A stretch of DNA of 63,290 nt, counting the filler, from Reticulomyxa filosa (lineage: Eukaryota; Protista; Foraminifera): the NCBI GenBank assembly GCA_000512085.1. It is 23 parts of 23 records of this genome, joined end to end, with 100 filler letters (N's around TTAATTAATTAA, not from the genome) between each part and the next. Parts side by side here need not be neighbours in the genome. Positions count along the whole stretch, not along the records: positions 9,948 to 14,488 come from ASPP01026519.1; 22 more parts are not named here. One strand, 5' to 3'. Each line of letters begins with the position of its first letter. Within the stretch, counting starts at the first letter, position 1. The notes under the pieces were generated by a model that had not been told where the DNA came from, did no database searches, and was given only the letters and a program-made list of their open reading frames with translations. This document shows, piece after piece, positions 1-14,488 of the stretch. Position numbers and translations under genes: made by a program.

Positions 1-53
1 AAAAAAAAAAAAAAAGACGAAAATAATAAAAAGAGTGCATATATGCAAAAATG

Positions 54-2201
54 CTAAAAACCGATGTGATGTTTGATGGCTCGATAAGGGTCGAATGTTT
101 CTTGAGATTGGCTATGTTCAGCGTTAATATTGCATGCCAATTGCGAAGCAGACAAAGTATCGTCTTTTTGAGCACCATCGTGGTGTATTTGGCTTATATC
201 TTTGTTGTTATGTTCCGCCGCTTTGGTTTCATTCCGTTGGTAATCGTGTTCAGTGTTAGAAACAGCATCTTCTTCTCTTTGTCCTTGTCCTTGTTCTTGA
301 TCTTGCGCTTGCTCTTGCGCTTGCGCTTGTTCTTGCTCTTGCTCTTGCTCGCGTCCGTCGTAGTTGTTGTCGTCGTCGTCGTCGTCATCATCATTTGGCT
401 CTAGTGGCAGTGACAACTTCATGTCGGAGTTGTTTACACTCGCTTCCCGCAACGTGGACGGCGAAACAAAGCTTGAGCCGTCGCCATCGAGACTAAAATA
501 TTCCCCTTGCAAATCGGGACAAGATTGGGTCCTTACCTCTGGCATCAATGAACAATCGTCCATTTGTTGCTGTTGTAATGGTTGTGCATGTGGATGTGCA
601 TGTGGATGTGGTTCTTTGTCTGAGTTTGTGGATTGAATAGTCTCTATAAAACTATCTTTGAGGTCTTCGCTGGTAGTATGAATCGACCCATCCTCGCCAT
701 TCTTTGTCTTATTATTGTCATTGCTATTGCTATTGTATTCGACCGAGTCTTTTTCCTTTGAAACCTGCAATATCGATTGGTCCTGCACGTGGTCGCATGC
801 CGCTTCCATTTTCTGAAAGTGATATTTTTCGACCAACTTCGACAAGTTGCTCATTTTCTGCTCATGACCGCCTTCGGCTTCCGTGCTTGTCCATATATGG
901 TCTGCGACCTCTCCGAGCTGTTTCGGCGTCCCCATGCCACTCTTGCAAGATACGCACGACGTACACGAGGTACGGAACACTGCTGCGGAGTTATAATACT
1001 GCTTGTCATTGTCTTCGTCCGCATTTCCAAGTATCTTTATCTTCTTGCTATCTTTCCTAAAAAAAAAAAGAAAGTGTTTCAGCCACAACGTATACATATA
1101 CATATACACATACACATGTACATGCGAAAAAAAAAAAAAAATTGAATAATACACACACACACACACACACACACGTATACAAATATATAAGACATACATA
1201 CTTGTCGTGGGTGGTATTCGAATGCATTGAGTTGGAATGATATAGCAGCGGTATCAAGGTGTTTGTGTTTTTCATCAGTTCTGTCAGCACTTTGTCGGTG
1301 GTAGACAGCTGCTTCAAATTCAAAAAGTACGCGCACATAAAGCGTTTACAGCAGGTTTGATAGCATAACAAGTGCTTCATGCACGCCACTTTGCTTATTA
1401 AGTTTGGCAAGTCTTTTCCTTTTCGATGGTACTATGTACATATCAGTTGCACACATATTGCCATTATATAACCTCTCTCTCTCTTTCTAAATATAATGCA
1501 AAAAGGCAGTTTACACATTTAAAAAAAATATAAAAAAAAAAAAAAAAAATGAAGCCAACGAACAACAAAGCACAAACTTGTCTGTTATTAATACATTTTT
1601 CATTGACAGCTGGATCTTGCCAAAGATATGGGAAACATATTATAGGAGTCTTGTGTCACGCGCATATATTTATTGTTCATGTTGTTGTTTTTGTTTATTT
1701 TTTTTTTAATTGATTGGTTGCCAAATATCAAGTCTCAAAAACAAACAAACAAAAATTGAACAACCATCCGATCCACTTAACATCCACCGAATGCATTACT
1801 GTTTTTTCATTTTGCAAATTTTTTTGGCTTTTATGTTTGGACTCATCTTTTGCATTTGCTTCGTACGCTAACTGCTCCCCTCGCACTTCCGTTTGACTTG
1901 CTGAACTGTTGGTGCCTACGCTTGTCTCATATGCTTTTGTGCTGTTCACTTGGTTTGCACAGTTGCTGTCTTGCTTTATATTGCTCTTCGAATGGGACAC
2001 GCTTTGATCTTTCTTCCCCTTTATTTCTTGACGCTTGTCGTAGTTGCATTGGATTTGATTGGAGCTGTAGGGCCGAAGTAGAAATTCATTTGGTCTTGGA
2101 CGATGTACAGACCGTGGGGTAAGAACTGTCCCATCAGGATTATTCTTAGGGGTTTCATTGGGTTTCACCCCTCGCTTGTGATAAATTATTCGATTGCTCA
2201 T
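54..2201 (-). CDS. Hypothetical low-complexity (Q/E/D/N-rich) protein, probably multi-exon
   Basis: Long hydrophilic minus-strand ORFs (54-~1036 and 1728-2201) separated by (TA)/(CA)n and homopolymer intron-like sequence. No recognisable domain; joining them into one gene is inferred. Confidence 0.4.
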
Positions 2202-2587
2202 GTTTAGAGATCAGTTTTTTTTTTTGCAAGGGAGTAAACAAAAAAAAAAGTTTGCTGAAAAAAAACAATTGTGACTACAGAAAATTTCTCAAAAATTTAA
2301 TTTATTTCAACTTGTTGCTGTATAATGTAAAATAAAGTTGGCAAGATAACTTGCTTCTGTTTTGTCAATGTTTTTAAAATTAGTCTTTGATAAGACAAAA
2401 TATTAATTGATATTTATATATTTTTTTTGGTTGTCGATGGGAAATATCTTTTCTAAATGCAGATTAACATGAAATTACAGTGTTATTTCTATGAACTAAT
2501 AAAAATCAATCTTTAACGACCTCTCGCTCTTAGAAAAAATCTAGATTAGATCAATTTCTTAAAGGGGTCTTGAGGACGTTGCATTAA

Positions 2588-4153
2588 ATGTTACAGCATA
2601 ACATGCCAGCGAAGGTAGTACTAAAGATATTGGCCATTTCTGCGCTGTTGTTAAGTTGCTTTTCAGAGGACTTTGACAGTACTGAAATTTCAGAAGAGCC
2701 TTTCTCGGAAGACCAAGTGCTTTCCGAGCAATTAGATTTAAGCAATTGGATGGCCCAAAAAAAGGCGTCATTATGGAACAAGACCCTCCAAGTCCTGAAC
2801 TTTTGTTATTTTGAGTGGAAATCTGTTCCACATTTTAAAAAAGCACTTGTGTGCACCCCCCTTTTGACAAGGAAGAGAAAAACGAGAACATTAAAAAAAA
2901 AAAGAAGCAACAGCAAAGCAAGTCAAACAAATAAAACGTAAACAGGAGCTGACTATACTAGGCACGCACGATAGTGGTTCATTTAACTTAACGAACGAAA
3001 TGCTGCCTGGAGCAGAGCCAAAAGATTTGGAGGCACTAATTGATTTGGCGGAAATGTTGAATATTCCAATTTGGATCGTAATTACCCGATGGAGTAGATC
3101 TCAGCCATTCGGATTTTATGAGCAAATGATGAGCGGAGTCCGCTATTTCGATCTTCGATGTGGTTGGATGCACAAATGGATGCAGTGGGTCGCCTTTCAT
3201 GGCGAAGCTGGTATTTTTTCCCCCCTCCCCCCTTTTTTTTTGTTTGTTTGACAGATAATGTTGTCGTAAGAACATATATTCCAACGCTCGCAAAAATTGT
3301 TGCAACCAAGTTTTTTTTTTTTGGGGGGGGGGGCTAAATGAAGGACAAGCCATAAGTACATTAATGTTGGACGTGAAAGAGTTTTTAGACGAACATCCTC
3401 AAGAAATCGTTTTGATCGAAGCGTCACATTTAGATGGCTCACCAACAGAACTCCAAAAACAATGGTTGGTCAATAATTTCACAGAAATTTTCGGTGATTA
3501 TTTGCTCCCTGTTCAATCCACTTATCCGACATACGGAGTTCTGTCCATTTTTTTTTTTCGCTCCCTCTTGCTTTTTTTTAAAAAAAAAAACCACTTAAAA
3601 AATTGTATTAACCTGGATAATGCGTACATTACAAAAAAAAAAAAAGCAAATGGTAACGTCCGGACAACGTGTATTTTTGTCGCTGGACGACAGCATTGTG
3701 AGCAACTATAACAATATATGGCCTGGGACTGCTTTTGAAAATACATACGCTGACTCCGCTCAATTACGCGAGATGATGCAATATAATAATATGCAAGTAG
3801 CGCTGTTTAATGCCAATCTAACCAATTCCAATTCCTTGTTCAAAATTTCCTGGACTTTGACCCCACAAACTGCAACGGTTATCAGTACGGTTGAACCACA
3901 TTCACCTCACACCCTATTGGTAACATATATGTACATGATGTTTCTTGTCATTACTCTAAACAGATACATACATAAATACGTGAAACTAAATAATAATAAT
4001 AATAAAAAGGAACTGGCTGCGGTGGCCAACGCGGAAATGTGGACATGGGCGTCACAACAGTTCGGCAGGAATTTAAGAATTGGTAACATATTTTTGTACG
4101 ATGATTACCCCACTGCTAGTATCGTTGAAATTATCAACGCTTTGTATAATTAA
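2588..4153 (+). CDS. PI-PLC X-domain-containing protein (PLCXD-like) with signal peptide, spliced
   Basis: Hydrophobic N-terminus, then LSNWM, LTILGTHDSGS (catalytic His), GVRYFDLR, VAFHG and FLDEHPQEIVLI. In-frame GT-AG introns at 2792-2945, 3211-3343, 3538-3646, plus one near 3921-4009. Confidence 0.85.
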
Positions 4154-4777
4154 GTCAAAACAACTTAGCTCCTTTCTCTAGCTCATTGAATCCATCACGT
4201 TTTTACTTCGAATTCAATGTGTAGACACACTCGAGCAATTACACAAATAAGTAAATAAGCAAAGTTACAAACAAGCAATGTATTAATTAATTCGCATAAA
4301 ATTGTCAATGCACTTTCATGGAGCCAAATGAGCTAGCCCTTATTCAGGTTATGGTTTTTTCTTATTTTTTCTAAATCTCTTTTGGTTAGTTCTTGAATCT
4401 GAAAAATTTTATTTCCGACTATCCTGTAGAGCAAGCCCTACGGAGTACGACCCCAAAGGACTCTTAGAATCCTCATACTAACTTCTTCATTTCTTTTTTT
4501 TGCATCGGACATCTCATTTTCAACAGCTGATTTAACTGTCCTTTTCTTTTGAGACTAAGATAATTACAAAATCTGGTGGAGTAAATAAGAGGAAAAAAAA
4601 AAGAGAGAATTTTGACGAGATTAAAATGAAATCTTTTTCCCCACAAGATATGAAAACCACAATGGCATTTAACTTTAAATAGAGATAAAAACCAAAAACA
4701 AAATAAAGATATGAAAACGTAAATAAACAAACAAGTAGGCAAGGAACAAACAATTCATGTTGTAATTTTCGTCGTTG

Positions 4778-5314
4778 TCACTGTCTTTCGACATTTCTTC
4801 GACTTCTTCGATCATGTCTCCGTCGAGTGGAGTGAGGCTGTGACTGAGAGTGTAAAGACGTGCGAGTGGTGTTGTGATTCTGTGCAAGAAAACTCGCATT
4901 ATCATTAGACACATCTGTGGTAGAGTTGTGTGCAATAAATGAAATAGGTGCATCAAAGGATTGTTCGAACGAGCGAGTAGAAGGATTGGTGGTCAAATTG
5001 TTGTGATCATGACCATAGGGATTGTCGTTGTGCATTGCATCAAGACTCCATCTGTCATCAAATAGCTCTCGCTCCAATTCTTGCACGGATGGACTTAAGC
5101 GCGGATTTGAAGTGATCGGTGGTGTTGTCTCTGAAGTGGCATTGTTTCCAACCGCACGAGTGGTGTCTATTTGAGGAGAATATTCGTGATTTTGTATTAG
5201 CGTTTCAAATGAATTGATTGGGCCAGTTCCAGGTGCCGTGAGTAATGGAGTCGAAGGTCCACTCAAAACAATGGTGGCACTGTCATTCGTCGAATTGGCA
5301 CCTCTCCACCACAA
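4778..5314 (-). CDS. Hypothetical S/T/N-rich protein, C-terminal exon
   Basis: 178-aa hydrophilic ORF preceded by an intron-like (TA)n tract; no domain recognised. Confidence 0.35.
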   Translation of the reverse strand: MWWRGANSTNDSATIVLSGPSTPLLTAPGTGPINSFETLIQNHEYSPQIDTTRAVGNNATSETTPPITSNPRLSPSVQELERELFDDRWSLDAMHNDNPYGHDHNNLTTNPSTRSFEQSFDAPISFIAHNSTTDVSNDNASFLAQNHNTTRTSLHSQSQPHSTRRRHDRRSRRNVERQ

Positions 5315-9947: not shown

Positions 9948-10208
9948 CGCTTTCGTCTCTAACTAGACTCAAAGCTCCAATAAAGTTTTTATCGCCTTTT
10001 TTGCGAATTTGCGTAAACGCTAATTTTTTCGTTTTTTATTTCGTTTTATACATAGCGTCTTACAAGTAAGTTACTGCTAAGTGTTTTTTTATTATCATTA
10101 AAACTTCCTAATTGTAAAAGTTTTTTTATCCTTTTGTGTGTTTGCCTTTATAAAATTACAAAACTAGAAACTTTATTGGAGCTTTGAGTCTAGTTAGAGA
10201 CGAAAGCG
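9948..10208. repeat. Perfect 41-bp inverted repeat (9948-9988 / 10168-10208), 179-nt spacer
   Basis: CGCTTTCGTCTCTAACTAGACTCAAAGCTCCAATAAAGTTT is the exact reverse complement of 10168-10208. The left arm is cut by the contig start. Confidence 0.95.
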
Positions 10209-10233
10209 CTACTCCAGAAATAAATTTTCTAGT
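10163..10233 (+). ncRNA. Type I hammerhead-ribozyme-like RNA with variant core
   Basis: Stem I TGGAG(10177-81)/CTCCA(10212-16), extended by TTTAT/ATAAA and ACTAGAAA/TTTCTAGT. Core CTTTGA; stem II GTCT-agttag-AGAC; GAA; palindromic stem III AGCGCT; unpaired A10211 at the cleavage position. Confidence 0.6.
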
Positions 10234-10569
10234 AAAAAGAAAAAACTTGCGAAATTCCGTAGATAAGACCGGATAAGGATAAAATAAAGTGACTGAGTCA
10301 GTCTCTGAAAAAAGTACAACTAGTTTCAAAGTTTTATTACCAACAGGTATAATAAGTATTAAACCTACGTGGTTTAGTTAATAATACTGTTAGTTGGGTC
10401 ATAAGGCTAAAGTTTAGCTGAAAATAAACTACTAGTATACTAAATTAGACCAGTCTACACAAAAAATCCACTCCGGAAAAAGTTTGTGGTAAAAAATCCA
10501 CTCTGAAAAATAAAAAGAACCACAAAAAAAGTGCGAACAGCCGTAGCAGCCAAAAAGTATACGTACAAA

Positions 10570-11456
10570 ATGGCTACCAGTCTACAAGAAAGTACGATCA
10601 TGACAACAGAAAATGAAGAAACAGAAGAAATAACAAGGATACAAGCACATGGTCCAATGGAAGTAGAAAAAATGGAAATATTGGATGATGATATTTTAGA
10701 TAAACTAATTATAGAAAAAGAAAGACAATGGCTAGCACACCTTTTGAAGCATACTACGATATGAATGCAGATGATGATGAAGCAGAAGCATCAATAGAAT
10801 TTAAAATAAAAGGCAGAGAAGAAGTAAAAAGATGCAAAGATGAAGAAATAAAAGAAATCTGCAGAAAATTTTGGATTGAGAATGAATCTAGTAGAAAACA
10901 AGATTTTGAAGAAGAAGAACTAGAATTCTCTACCAATATGGTTAAGAAAAGAGAGTGGGAAAACAACTCAAAAATGGAACACAGCAAACATGAAAACGCA
11001 AGAATAATAGAAATGATGGAAAAAGACATATACAAAGCAAACACAAGAATCAAAGAAATACTTTCGACAATCTGTTACAGAACACCAAGCACTACTAGTC
11101 AATGGCAATGGTTCAAGACACTAGAAGAAGTAATTGAAGAAGAGGAAATTGGAATAGTTCTAGGATATAGAACAGAATCAAGAGTCTGGCTAGGTAGAAT
11201 TTATAATGATGAAGGTTACAGATATTACATGAAATGCAAGAAAAACCAAAGTTCGGAAAACATACCAGAAGTAGATTTAAAAGTGACAAGTAATGGATAC
11301 ATAACAGTAGACAACAAACTAATAAACATTGAAGATACTATGATATCCAGAATGGTCGAAGTAATGCTAAACAAAAAACAATTAATCACTTCAAGTATGG
11401 TTAGAAGTTATCATAACTGGTTAATTGAAGAAGAAAAAGAAAAAGAAAGACAATAA
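10570..11456 (+). CDS. PLE-associated ORF1 of unknown function (acidic N-half), split by a one-base frameshift near 10742
   Basis: Overlapping ORFs 10570-10764 and 10728-11456 join as QWLAHL-FEAYYDMN if one T is added to the TTTT run. Codon style matches the RT ORF. Confidence 0.6.
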
Positions 11457-11687
11457 AATAATATTACATACAAAGTGGGTGTAGTTTCTTGATAAAAGTG
11501 AGTAATCCAACAAGAATACTACATGCGAAAATGCGTAATAGGGATAATTCTAGCAAAGGAAATTGTACAAGTTATTTATAAATAAGAAAAGGAAGTAAAA
11601 TAGTTACAGCAGTAAAAGTTATTACATAGTAAAGAAATTTATATTCATTAATAATTGCTTTTAAAATTATAAACAAGAATAAACATT

Positions 11688-14392
11688 ATGTCCAACATTA
11701 TCGATCTCACCAGCGACTCGGAACCGGAATCCAAAGTTATTGAATTCTCCCCAGCAAATACATGGGCATCGGATACGTATAATTTACAAAAGATAGAATT
11801 CTACCACGAAATGAGTAATTTACTTAATTGGATCTCATATCAATGGGCTTTAATATTAGTCTTAAAGAAGTTAAATCAAAGAAGTGAAATCTTTAGTATT
11901 GAATCAACGCTCGGTATTAGTATGAGATCAATTACAGAACTTAACAAGATACAAAGACAACAAACGGAAGTAGTTACAGCAATAATTAAGGTGCTTAACT
12001 ATATGAAATTAAGACCATACAATGGACCTGCATGTACAATTAGAGACATGTTAGGAATAAATCTAAAAAACATGGAGCAAAAATATATGTGGTCAAAACC
12101 GGAAGCACTAGAAACAGCGACTCTAGTATACTTCATTGAAAAAGATTATGATTACATTGGCAGAGTATCTGCAAGACATTACAACCCGTGTAATCTATTA
12201 GAAGTTGGAAAGAAATATGTTCCAGAAGATGATGAAATAGAAGAATATGCACTTGTAAATAACATCAGAGTTGAATCAATAAATATACACTCATACAAAG
12301 AATGGGAAATTGATAACACTCAAAAACTACTAAATATAATAAAAGAATATAAATATAAAACGATTAGATTATATAGTCCCAGAATTAGTGAAGTAGCAAC
12401 ACTATATATTATATCCAGAATTACAGATAGAACAACACATTATCAAGCAACTAAAAAAATGGAAATATATTATATAAAAAAAGAATATATAACAAAAAAA
12501 GAAGAATTTGAAAGAAATATCAATGATTGGAAGAAATGGGAATTAATAGTAAAAGCAGCAGAACAAGAAAACAAAGAAAAAACAAAGAAAGAAATAAAGC
12601 AAAAGCTTATTAAAGATAAAATCAGAATAATTGGCGTCTCGGATAAAGTACAAGACGAAATTGATCTGGAATTATTATACTTTCTCAGCAGAGGAGCGAA
12701 ATACGCACCACATAAATGGATTGAAAAAGAAGAAAGAATAAAAGAAAAAGTAGATAACATTATGATAAGATTTGAATTAGATGAAAAACAGTAAGACCAA
12801 TAGTCACGAATATGGATTCAGTGAAAGCAGTGGTATCAAAAAAAGTAGCTAACTGGCAAAAAGTATTATTATCAGAAATGGACAATAATTATAACTACTG
12901 TGTAAAAGACACTTTTGACCTAGTTGATAAACTTAAAAGACTTGAAAATAAGAAATATACAATGATTGGAGCAGATATAAAGAATTTCTTCCTAATTATT
13001 AAAATACAAGAATTAGAAAATGCATTATCATGGCATATAGATGAGATCATAAAAAAACAAAAACATAACAAAAATATTTGGCAAAAAAGAAAGGAATATA
13101 TGATAAATTACTACAAAGATGAAGAACTAAGATTATTTAGCTGTGATAATAGAATATACAGAACGGACAGAGGAGTAGGAATGGGAGATTACGATGCACC
13201 AATAGCAGCACAACTAGTAAGAGCATACAAAGAAATGATATGGCTCAAAAAGAAAAATATGACAGTAAAAAATGAACTAATTAAAATATTTGGATACATG
13301 GATGATATTCTAATAATAATAGATGAAGAAAAATATGGAATTGAAAAATTCATAAAAGAAGATCTTGAAGAGATATATAATCCATGGGAATTAGAAATGA
13401 CAGCAGGCTCAGTACAAAAATACCTAGATCTCACTATAGAAACTGACAATAATGAAAAATACGGAAATGACAGAGAAATACAAATAAACAATGGGAAATT
13501 AGTAATAAAGAACTATAAAAGGAAATACAACAAAGAAATATCAAATCTAGAACTAGAAGAGAATAAAATAGAGAATAGAATACAAGAAATAAAAACAACC
13601 ATACAGAATAAAACAGGACAACTAACCTGGTTAACAAGATCAATAAGAGACGGAAAACAAGAAATAAGATTATTAAAAGAAAGAATTAAAAAGGACAGAA
13701 AAGAAACAGAATCAGAAAGCCTATTAAGACCTAATTTCCGACTAGTAAATATCAATGATAGTACAGATGAAGAAAAAACAATGAAAAATAAAGAAAATAT
13801 TAAAAGTATACAAGAGAATATAAGTGAAGAAACTAAAGAGATAGTTAAAATCAAAAAAGAAATCAGAGAACTTGCAGATATAAAAAGATAATTAAATAGC
13901 ACAATCAACAAAAATAATGATCTAACATGGTATGTCACACCCAAAAGTGGCATGGTTCAAAGATATGCAAATCCCGAGACAGCTGGACCTAGAATCTGGA
14001 AAATGCAAGCAATGAAAACAAATAGAGACAGATGGATAAGATTAACACCCAATAAAAAGATATATGATATCGAAATAAAGAATGTAATTGATGAATTCAT
14101 TAAATGTGGATATAAACCAGAATTAGTAAAGAAAAATTTTGAATATATATACATGGACACAGAAGAATACAAACAACAAAGACTTGAAACTTTAGAAAGA
14201 AGAAAAGAATGGCTTGAATTTCCAAAAATAGTAAGCAGATTTAACATCACAGACAATTATGATACCAAAAAAGAAGAACAACTAGATCAAATAATTAATA
14301 ACAAAATTAAATGGACCAAATCAGCCAAACCTAATATATATAGAATAATAAGAGGAATAAACTCAGGAAGACAAATTACAGGAGATCTATAA
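11688..14392 (+). pseudogene. PLE reverse transcriptase ORF, disrupted (frameshift at ~12785, in-frame TAA at 13889-13891)
   Basis: 11688-12794 carries the N-terminal region and LSRGAKYAP. The -1 frame continues KTVRPIVTN into 12812-13891 (ADIKNFF 12971, GVGMG 13172, YMDD 13295, YLDL 13421). The same frame resumes after a single TAA with LTWYVTPK..QRYANPETAGPRIWK..RWIRLT..FIKCGYKPELV (thumb). Confidence 0.85.
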
Positions 14393-14426
14393 TACGTATT
14401 ACACGAATACGAACAGAAATACGTAT

Positions 14427-14488
14427 AATACAGAAACGAAAAACATGAAAGAATACAGAAACGAAAAAACATGGACAAATACAGAAAC
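14427..14488 (+). repeat. 25-26 bp tandem repeat at element 3' end
   Basis: AATACAGAAACGAAAAACATGAAAG / AATACAGAAACGAAAAAACATGGACA / AATACAGAAAC (cut by contig end). Confidence 0.8.

Follow-up and report, generated by a model that had tools for sequence, protein, structure and literature searches.

The window analysed here, a 63,290-nucleotide stretch of Reticulomyxa filosa DNA (filler included; assembly GCA_000512085.1), carries at positions 9948-14488 the entire 4,541-bp contig ASPP01026519.1. R. filosa is a foraminifer and belongs to the Rhizaria. An earlier note on this piece had described it as an unusual Penelope-like element (PLE) of a rhizarian-type genome, with a structured, ribozyme-like leader, an orphan open reading frame (ORF1), a long N-terminal domain, a reverse transcriptase (RT) and no C-terminal endonuclease. 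The host attribution agrees with the source of the contig, and related proteins on other contigs of the same assembly are also labelled Reticulomyxa filosa. Quite probably, the contig holds one inactivated member of a Penelope-like family of this organism that has two ORFs and lacks an endonuclease. Its parts are the following (UTR, untranslated region; dN/dS, ratio of nonsynonymous to synonymous substitution rates).

9948-9991, no strand: left arm of a 44-nt inverted repeat, formed by the first 44 nt of the contig and pairing with 10165-10208
9986-10599, + strand: non-coding leader with conserved blocks, 81-93% identical to locus L003 within the blocks; no Rfam match
10600-11456, + strand: ORF1, orphan, about 285 amino acids if intact; four R. 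filosa copies at 61-91% amino acid identity, with coding character read from dN/dS
11457-11687, + strand: spacer separating ORF1 from the RT ORF; 11462-11581 is a conserved block
11688-12683, + strand: N-terminal extension of the RT protein, orphan and mostly helical, about 330 amino acids long; shared with L003 and L006, with coding character read from dN/dS
12684-12710, + strand: PLE motif N1, LSRGAKYAP, in frame 0; aligns with the motifs of proteins P0003, P0004 and P0009
12711-12793, + strand: break, with a deletion of about 140 amino acids (about 420 nt) and a change of frame that removed N2 and N3, from comparison with P0003 and P0011
12785-13432, + strand: RT core, motifs 2 to 7; RVT_1 at E 9.8e-5, profile-profile match at 99.5% and E 3e-22
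13433-13957, + strand: variable linker rich in lysine and glutamate (K/E-rich) between RT7 and thumb, with an in-frame TAA; about 120 amino acids longer than in P0003
13958-14392, + strand: thumb-like region (QRYANP..FIKCGYKP) that aligns colinearly with the PLE thumb, then linker KPNIYRII at 14327-14350 and a stop placed as in P0003
14393-14488, + strand: beginning of the 3' UTR; a tandem repeat with a 26-nt unit (2.4 copies, 14427-14488) continues up to the contig end

The piece has a G+C content of 24-34%, with A in excess over T (AT skew +0.25 to +0.55) between about 10250 and its end. The A-skewed unit of the earlier note was recovered, with all coding features where they had been placed. 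Open frames on the + strand span 10728-11456, 11688-12794, 12812-13891 and 13952-14392; the frame bearing the RT runs over 12785-13888 and, past the TAA at 13889-13891, continues to a stop at 14390-14392. The K/E-rich stretch at 13433-13957 was considered as an intron and ruled out, and we take it as coding because about 130 codons stay open there in A/T-rich DNA.

The reverse transcriptase and the missing endonuclease

The RT core carries RPIV at 12794-12805 (frame 2), DIKNFF at 12974, GVGMGD at 13172 (the segment continuing to AAQLVR), YMDD at 13295 and YLDL at 13421. Upstream, the N1 motif aligns with LSKGQNF in P0003, LDKGLGF in P0004 and LAYGTKF in P0009; downstream, CGYKP at 14105 corresponds to the NGYP-type thumb motif, and PNIYRII occupies 14330-14350. 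Within Pfam the RT matched RVT_1 only, at a sub-threshold 22.6 bits. A HMMER search of 1.84 billion protein representatives with a cut-off of E<=1e-3 returned 20 proteins, one being the product of the contig itself. Four of the 19 others carry Pfam RVT_1 together with GIY-YIG, and the fusion of an RT to a GIY-YIG domain is the hallmark of Penelope-like elements (PMC8557442). When the endonuclease domains of these four were used to build a PLE-type GIY-YIG hidden Markov model (HMM), the domain was found in at least 11 of the 16 RT matches outside the contig's own clade; the GIY-YIG-bearing matches include animal proteins from Lygus (an insect) and Hydractinia (a cnidarian).

Profile-profile comparison with hhalign aligned the contig's own clade to the endonuclease-bearing PLEs with a probability of 99.5% (E 3e-22), over a region spanning N2 (DKG) and N3 (K.HK, RPI.S) through RT7. 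The N motifs of the lineage are seen in the relative P0003 as LSKGQNF, ADKG and KLHK..RPIIS. Since the significant matches are PLE-like, most of those outside the clade with GIY-YIG, and since homology reaches into N2 and N3, the RT is best classed as Penelope-like, and very divergent. The RT motifs and thumb reported earlier were found at their positions; for the thumb, the copy studied here is colinear with the PLE thumb at a weak score (E 4.7e-4, probability 33%), and the thumb of P0003 gave a non-significant match. A profile search of PDB with the RT reached DRT1, group II intron RTs and Tribolium TERT (E 6.5e-5), and is non-discriminating. The single-sequence PDB search returned only a coiled-coil chance match, and a word-index search with the RT recovered nothing beyond the product of the contig itself.

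In a maximum-likelihood tree of 20 sequences, this RT, P0002, P0011 and P0003 were split from the other 16 with support of 100/99. P0002 and P0011 come from R. filosa, and P0003 from the JGI metagenome 3300021855. The RT therefore belongs to a distinct, strongly separated small clade, in a tree that has long branches and no outgroup and from which the named clades Athena, Coprina, Naiad/Chlamys and TERT are absent. The suggestion of a distinct PLE lineage accordingly holds as far as separation from the 16 other RTs is concerned, and the tree does not extend it to the named clades. P0002 (L005:39-759) represents a third RT subfamily of R. filosa, 39% identical to this RT, whose insert between RT7 and thumb is different and contains repeats ((E/Q)NFP-type units). 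As this insert lies at the same place, the linker between RT7 and thumb is a variable site in the clade.

No endonuclease was found behind the thumb. The stop at 14390-14392 lies 13 codons past PNIYRII, and in P0003, 30% identical to this RT, 8 codons separate the corresponding linker motif from the stop, beyond which lie 1.4 kb without coding sequence; at a second R. filosa locus, L004, 2.4 kb beyond the thumb are without endonuclease signal. The best score of the GIY-YIG HMM in six-frame translations of L001-L007 was E 0.44, and an hhalign comparison of the PLE GIY-YIG profile with the thumb piece gave no match. Because no locus of the clade shows GIY-YIG, including the region downstream of L004 and the complete unit L002 (the contig of P0003), the absence of the endonuclease, already noticed in this copy, is a trait of the lineage and not an accident of the copy.

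Other parts of the element and related loci

ORF1 is an orphan, as had been proposed: it has no Pfam or Atlas match, and its relatives were found in R. filosa only (L003, L006 and L007, at 61-91% amino acid identity). It combines an acidic, helical N-terminal half with a conserved C-terminal half. The long N-terminal domain, also recognised earlier, is equally orphan, with no Pfam match (no GIY-YIG even at E<=10) and no usable Atlas match; its first 150-190 amino acids are shared with L003 (62% identity over 151 amino acids) and L006 (87% over 191). Word-index searches returned three R. filosa relatives for ORF1 and one for the extension. The dN/dS values are 0.12-0.24 for ORF1 and 0.09-0.29 for the extension, and because of these values both orphan parts are taken to have evolved as proteins, that is, as real coding sequence under purifying selection. 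AF2 models of the two reached a pLDDT of 37 each and are unusable. Between them, the spacer block at 11462-11581 is 80-85% identical to L003 and L007 across subfamilies, which exceeds the average of the coding parts; it may act as a signal for translation or processing.

The copy on this contig is defective, in line with the earlier description, and by our reading of its frames it is dead, with three lesions. LSRGAKYAP and RPIV are separated by 27 codons, a stop at 12792-12794 and the frame change near 12785. The distance from N1 (or N2) to RPI.S is about 170 amino acids in P0003, which keeps ADKG and KLHK there, and about 85 in P0011. As relatives hold 85-170 amino acids between these motifs, this copy carries a deletion of about 140 amino acids together with a frameshift; N1 alone of N1-N3 is retained, and the loss of N2 and N3 is damage to this one copy that the family as a whole does not share. 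The second lesion is the in-frame TAA at 13889-13891, which interrupts the RT frame. A further one, which the earlier description did not mention, splits ORF1 through a 1-nt deletion at about 10738/10739; the true start is the ATG at 10600, and intact ORF1 is a single ORF of 276-278 amino acids in L003 and L007.

The structured, ribozyme-like leader did not survive comparison with other copies. A single inverted repeat at the contig edge, with 44-nt arms at 9948-9991 and 10165-10208 that are 98% complementary, accounts for its strong predicted fold (z -8.4). Homology with L003 begins at 9986, so that the right arm is present there and the left arm absent, and the whole segment 9986-10239 is missing from L006; for these reasons the inverted repeat is not taken as part of the element. 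The left arm probably belongs to the margin of another copy in inverted orientation, or else arose in the assembly. L006 itself opens with an inverted duplication of 796 nt, in which 1-796 and 1002-1797 match at 99.6% identity across a spacer of 205 nt. In this stretch, L006:1-1797 (ASPP01028123.1, reversed), two copies of the upstream region and leader start stand back to back, as a recent palindrome or an assembly effect. Head-to-head pairs, or the assembly collapse of such pairs, thus appear to recur in the family.

Rfam gave no match at E<=1 in the window or in L002-L007 and L009-L011, no tRNA was found in the leader, and the hammerhead core CUGANGA..(C)GAAA was found neither in the piece, where the 3' UTR ends after 96 nt, nor in the related loci examined. 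A hammerhead, a tRNA or another known RNA was therefore ruled out for the leader, and the association with hammerheads drawn from other endonuclease-deficient PLEs finds no counterpart in the piece or its relatives. Four leader blocks (9986-10045, 10165-10224, 10345-10462 and 10509-10566) are 81-93% identical to L003 and thereby exceed the ORFs in conservation, which stand at about 70% identity with a dS of about 1. Stem-loops are predicted in a smaller conserved block at 10313-10440; the fold is modest (z -2.7), and comparison of three sequences shows two compensatory pairs in it. The leader is likely to act as a promoter or 5' UTR signal.

At the other end, 96 nt including the 26-nt repeat separate the stop from the contig end. 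A 17-mer of this 3'-tail repeat, TAATACAGAAACGAAAA, recurs several times in L003 (738-1048), upstream of the leader, within an array of 42-47-nt repeats, and its 14-nt core recurs in both arms of L006. Copies seem to be preceded by part of another 3' UTR, in the manner of PLE pseudo-LTRs (LTR, long terminal repeat), and sometimes to stand head to head. Recurrence of the 3'-tail motif upstream is what a pseudo-LTR would produce, and it matches the tandem or circular layout of L002. The contigs examined are 0.8-8 kb long, and no R. filosa contig spans the whole unit. Runs of common telomere motifs were absent from either strand of any locus examined. The truncated copy in L006 lies 1.4 kb from a gene with a globin domain (ORF L006:5070-5486, - strand; Pfam Globin, E 1.5e-4). 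In L003, the region past the end of homology (3605-4976) holds unrelated ORFs rich in glutamine and asparagine, with 35-nt repeats.

A metagenome scan for relatives returned only L002 (identical to L008; JGI Ga0213854_1148992, 1-4929). The ends of this contig are identical over 123 nt, and for this reason it is read as a complete tandem or circular unit of 4,806 bp. It holds an intact ORF1 of 534 amino acids with a basic tail, an overlapping intact RT ORF of 631 amino acids, and 1.4 kb of non-coding DNA. G+C is higher in the non-coding part, where GGTTCGATTCC near 2680 resembles a tRNA T-arm; ARAGORN calls no tRNA.

Further two-ORF loci were seen in R. filosa and in marine metagenomes. L004:13-5818 (ASPP01026434.1, reversed) belongs to a second endonuclease-less PLE-like family of R. 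filosa, with an upstream ORF of more than 1,305 amino acids that contains three CCHC-type knuckles, a dual-specificity phosphatase domain (HC..G..R; the Pfam matches, DSPc and Tc-R-P, are weak) and a CCCH-like finger, followed by a broken RT with a LINSGYFP thumb. L009, L010 and L011, marine metagenome contigs from ENA and TARA, form an endonuclease-less two-ORF group with an ORF1 of 867-898 amino acids and an RT of 520 amino acids (P0008); neither a GIY-YIG signal nor an Rfam match was found in them, and P0008 clusters with P0004, P0006 and P0010 (support 95/93). The two-ORF layout is thus present in L002, L004 and L009-L011 as well, but no resemblance was seen among the ORF1s of L002, L004 and L009, nor between any of them and ORF1 or the extension described here. 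The upstream ORF is accordingly a shared layout filled by lineage-specific proteins.

Alternative explanations

The alternative that fares best, unlikely as it is, is that the contig arose as a chimera in the assembly or through nested insertion, whereby a repeat made of ORF1 and the N-terminal region was joined to an unrelated, 5'-truncated RT element. The left-half copies in L003, L006 and L007 never reach the RT, L003 and L006 parting from this contig at about 12113 and 12244; the assembly is highly fragmented, and the contig ends in repeats on both sides. The frame that begins at 11688, however, stays open past the points of divergence, through the extension and into motif N1, over about 150 further codons at 29% G+C, and composition and A-skew are uniform across the junction. 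This unbroken frame and uniform composition support the link between extension and RT, and the layout with two ORFs recurs in the relatives described above.

An RT of the Naiad/Chlamys type, whose extension would be a reduced, permuted GIY-YIG domain as in Physarum_Pp1, is improbable. The sole hint in its favour within the contig is VYFIEKDYDYIGRVS at 12144-12170, a YIG-like nonamer; a precedent comes from Physarum, where an element is described that has in-frame stops and whose N-terminal endonuclease is reduced and weakly conserved (PMC8557442). Yet hhalign aligned the PLE GIY-YIG profile to the extension over only 9 columns, with a probability of 0.14%, the spacing to the GIY-like element is too short, and the R/H/E/N residues are lacking after VYFIEKDYDYIGRVS. 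There is also no IFD, as no extra segment lies between RPIV and DIKNFF relative to canonical PLEs, and CxC is absent from both the extension and the N-terminus of P0003. Finally, P0003 has about 45 amino acids ahead of N1, and ORF1 of L002 is without GIY-YIG signal.

Slightly less credible still is an ordinary PLE lineage with a C-terminal endonuclease, of which this copy merely lost the 3' end, an outcome that the earlier note had itself named as a way to be wrong. The short distance from the stop to the contig end and the other deletions in the copy would fit, but L002 with P0003 and L004 largely contradict it: the stops close behind the linker motif, the non-coding DNA that follows in L002, the endonuclease-free tail of L004 and an HMM that is blank in the clade and positive outside it all point the other way. 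The least likely of the readings, an RT of another, non-Penelope class, could draw on the low RVT_1 score, on PDB profiles that rank DRT1 and group II above TERT and on the tree without an outgroup, and is countered by library matches that are all PLE-like where significant, none coming from the far commoner LINE (long interspersed nuclear element), LTR or group II RTs, and by homology that extends into the PLE-specific N2 and N3, with N1 present in this copy.

Several points nevertheless weigh against an inactivated two-ORF, endonuclease-less PLE. ORF1 and the N-terminal module are joined to an RT on this contig alone. L003 and L006 look 3'-truncated; target-primed retroelements are usually 5'-truncated. 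Thumb homology is statistically weak. With neither an outgroup nor named PLE and TERT sequences in the tree, the RT could lie beside the PLEs rather than inside them. The low-confidence structural models would leave room for a nuclease of another type in the orphan domains. Hammerheads and the telomeric-repeat tails of endonuclease-deficient forms, usual in PLEs, are absent here.

Comparison with known elements and implications

If the contig is such a copy, the intact element would measure about 5.5-6 kb and consist of the leader, an ORF1 of about 285 amino acids, a second ORF, its stop and a repeat-bearing 3' UTR. The second ORF would encode, in order, the orphan extension of about 330 amino acids, N1-N3, the RT core, the K/E-rich linker and the thumb. 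Lacking a nuclease of its own, the RT would have to prime cDNA on existing 3'-OH ends, as offered by chromosome ends, breaks or nicks, and priming of this kind has been proposed for Athena and Coprina. By analogy with these, integration would most likely start from DNA 3' ends that are already present. ORF1 would probably serve as an RNA-binding or packaging partner.

Athena and Coprina, the endonuclease-deficient PLEs (Gladyshev and Arkhipova 2007, via PMC8557442), resemble the present element in having a PLE RT with N-motifs and a thumb (matched here at a weak score), no endonuclease and an upstream, co-oriented ORF; the host here is a protist, and the host range of Coprina is broad. Unlike them, it has an extension of about 330 amino acids fused to the RT, and neither a hammerhead nor reverse-complement telomeric repeats were found here or in the complete L002. 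As to their telomeric trait, one copy in R. filosa adjoins the globin-domain gene, and the 3' UTR available for comparison is limited to 96 nt. Terminons, the giant Athena-based elements of bdelloid rotifers, likewise combine an endonuclease-less PLE RT with extra co-oriented coding sequence, but they extend over tens of kb with many ORFs, compared with about 5.5-6 kb and one extra ORF here; only the L004 family, with its CCHC knuckles and phosphatase, has a very large ORF1 to compare with theirs.

Other similarities are found among the Chlamys group and its relatives. The Chlamys-related PLE-X1 of Selaginella and Chara, which lacks an endonuclease, also has a unique N-terminal extension without a recognisable endonuclease (PMC8557442). 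PLE-X1 and the Chlamys elements of Physarum share with the present element protist or early-plant hosts, in most cases the lack of a canonical hammerhead, and tandem repeats that lengthen the elements (PMC8557442), and Chlamys-1_pPol has a SAP domain between RT7 and thumb (PMC8557442), in the place taken here by the K/E-rich linker. Hammerheads are reported throughout the PLE groups, with Naiad and the majority of Chlamys as the exceptions (PMC8557442). In contrast to Naiad/Chlamys, no CxC, IFD or N-terminal GIY-YIG was detected in the R. filosa element, and no rDNA or microsatellite target was seen.

The canonical endonuclease-bearing PLEs (Penelope/Poseidon, Neptune, Nematis, Hydra) have in common with it the RT core, N1-N3, an NGYP-type thumb motif (CGYKP here, in a weakly scoring thumb), a linker motif that ends where their endonuclease begins, and, as the repeats suggest, a pseudo-LTR layout. 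They differ by GIY-YIG and hammerheads, both absent here, by one ORF instead of two, and by the strongly supported split in the tree. TERT is the sister group of PLE RTs in the literature, and the PDB profile search does reach Tribolium TERT; a multicopy, decaying mobile element with an ORF1, in which no TERT-specific domains were found, is nevertheless unlike a telomerase.

More tentatively, the R. filosa families and L002 may form a deep, hitherto undescribed, endonuclease-less PLE-like branch of superfamily rank in Rhizaria and uncultured protists. Such a branch would be distinct from Athena/Coprina, devoid of hammerheads and telomeric tails, and marked by lineage-specific ORF1s, tandem or circular units and head-to-head pairs; we regard it as possible rather than probable. 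If this is true, the branch would follow an integration route that needs no endonuclease and is not telomere-guided. In practical terms, use of the present material is limited by a dead copy and a fragmentary assembly.

Among retroelements, the RTs of PLEs are the nearest kin of telomerase, and their endonuclease-less forms are a candidate ancestral state. Our literature search turned up no report of PLEs in Foraminifera. A rhizarian endonuclease-less lineage without hammerheads or telomeric tails would extend the hosts of PLEs to this group, and would offer a system in which to examine the integration of an RT that has no nuclease.

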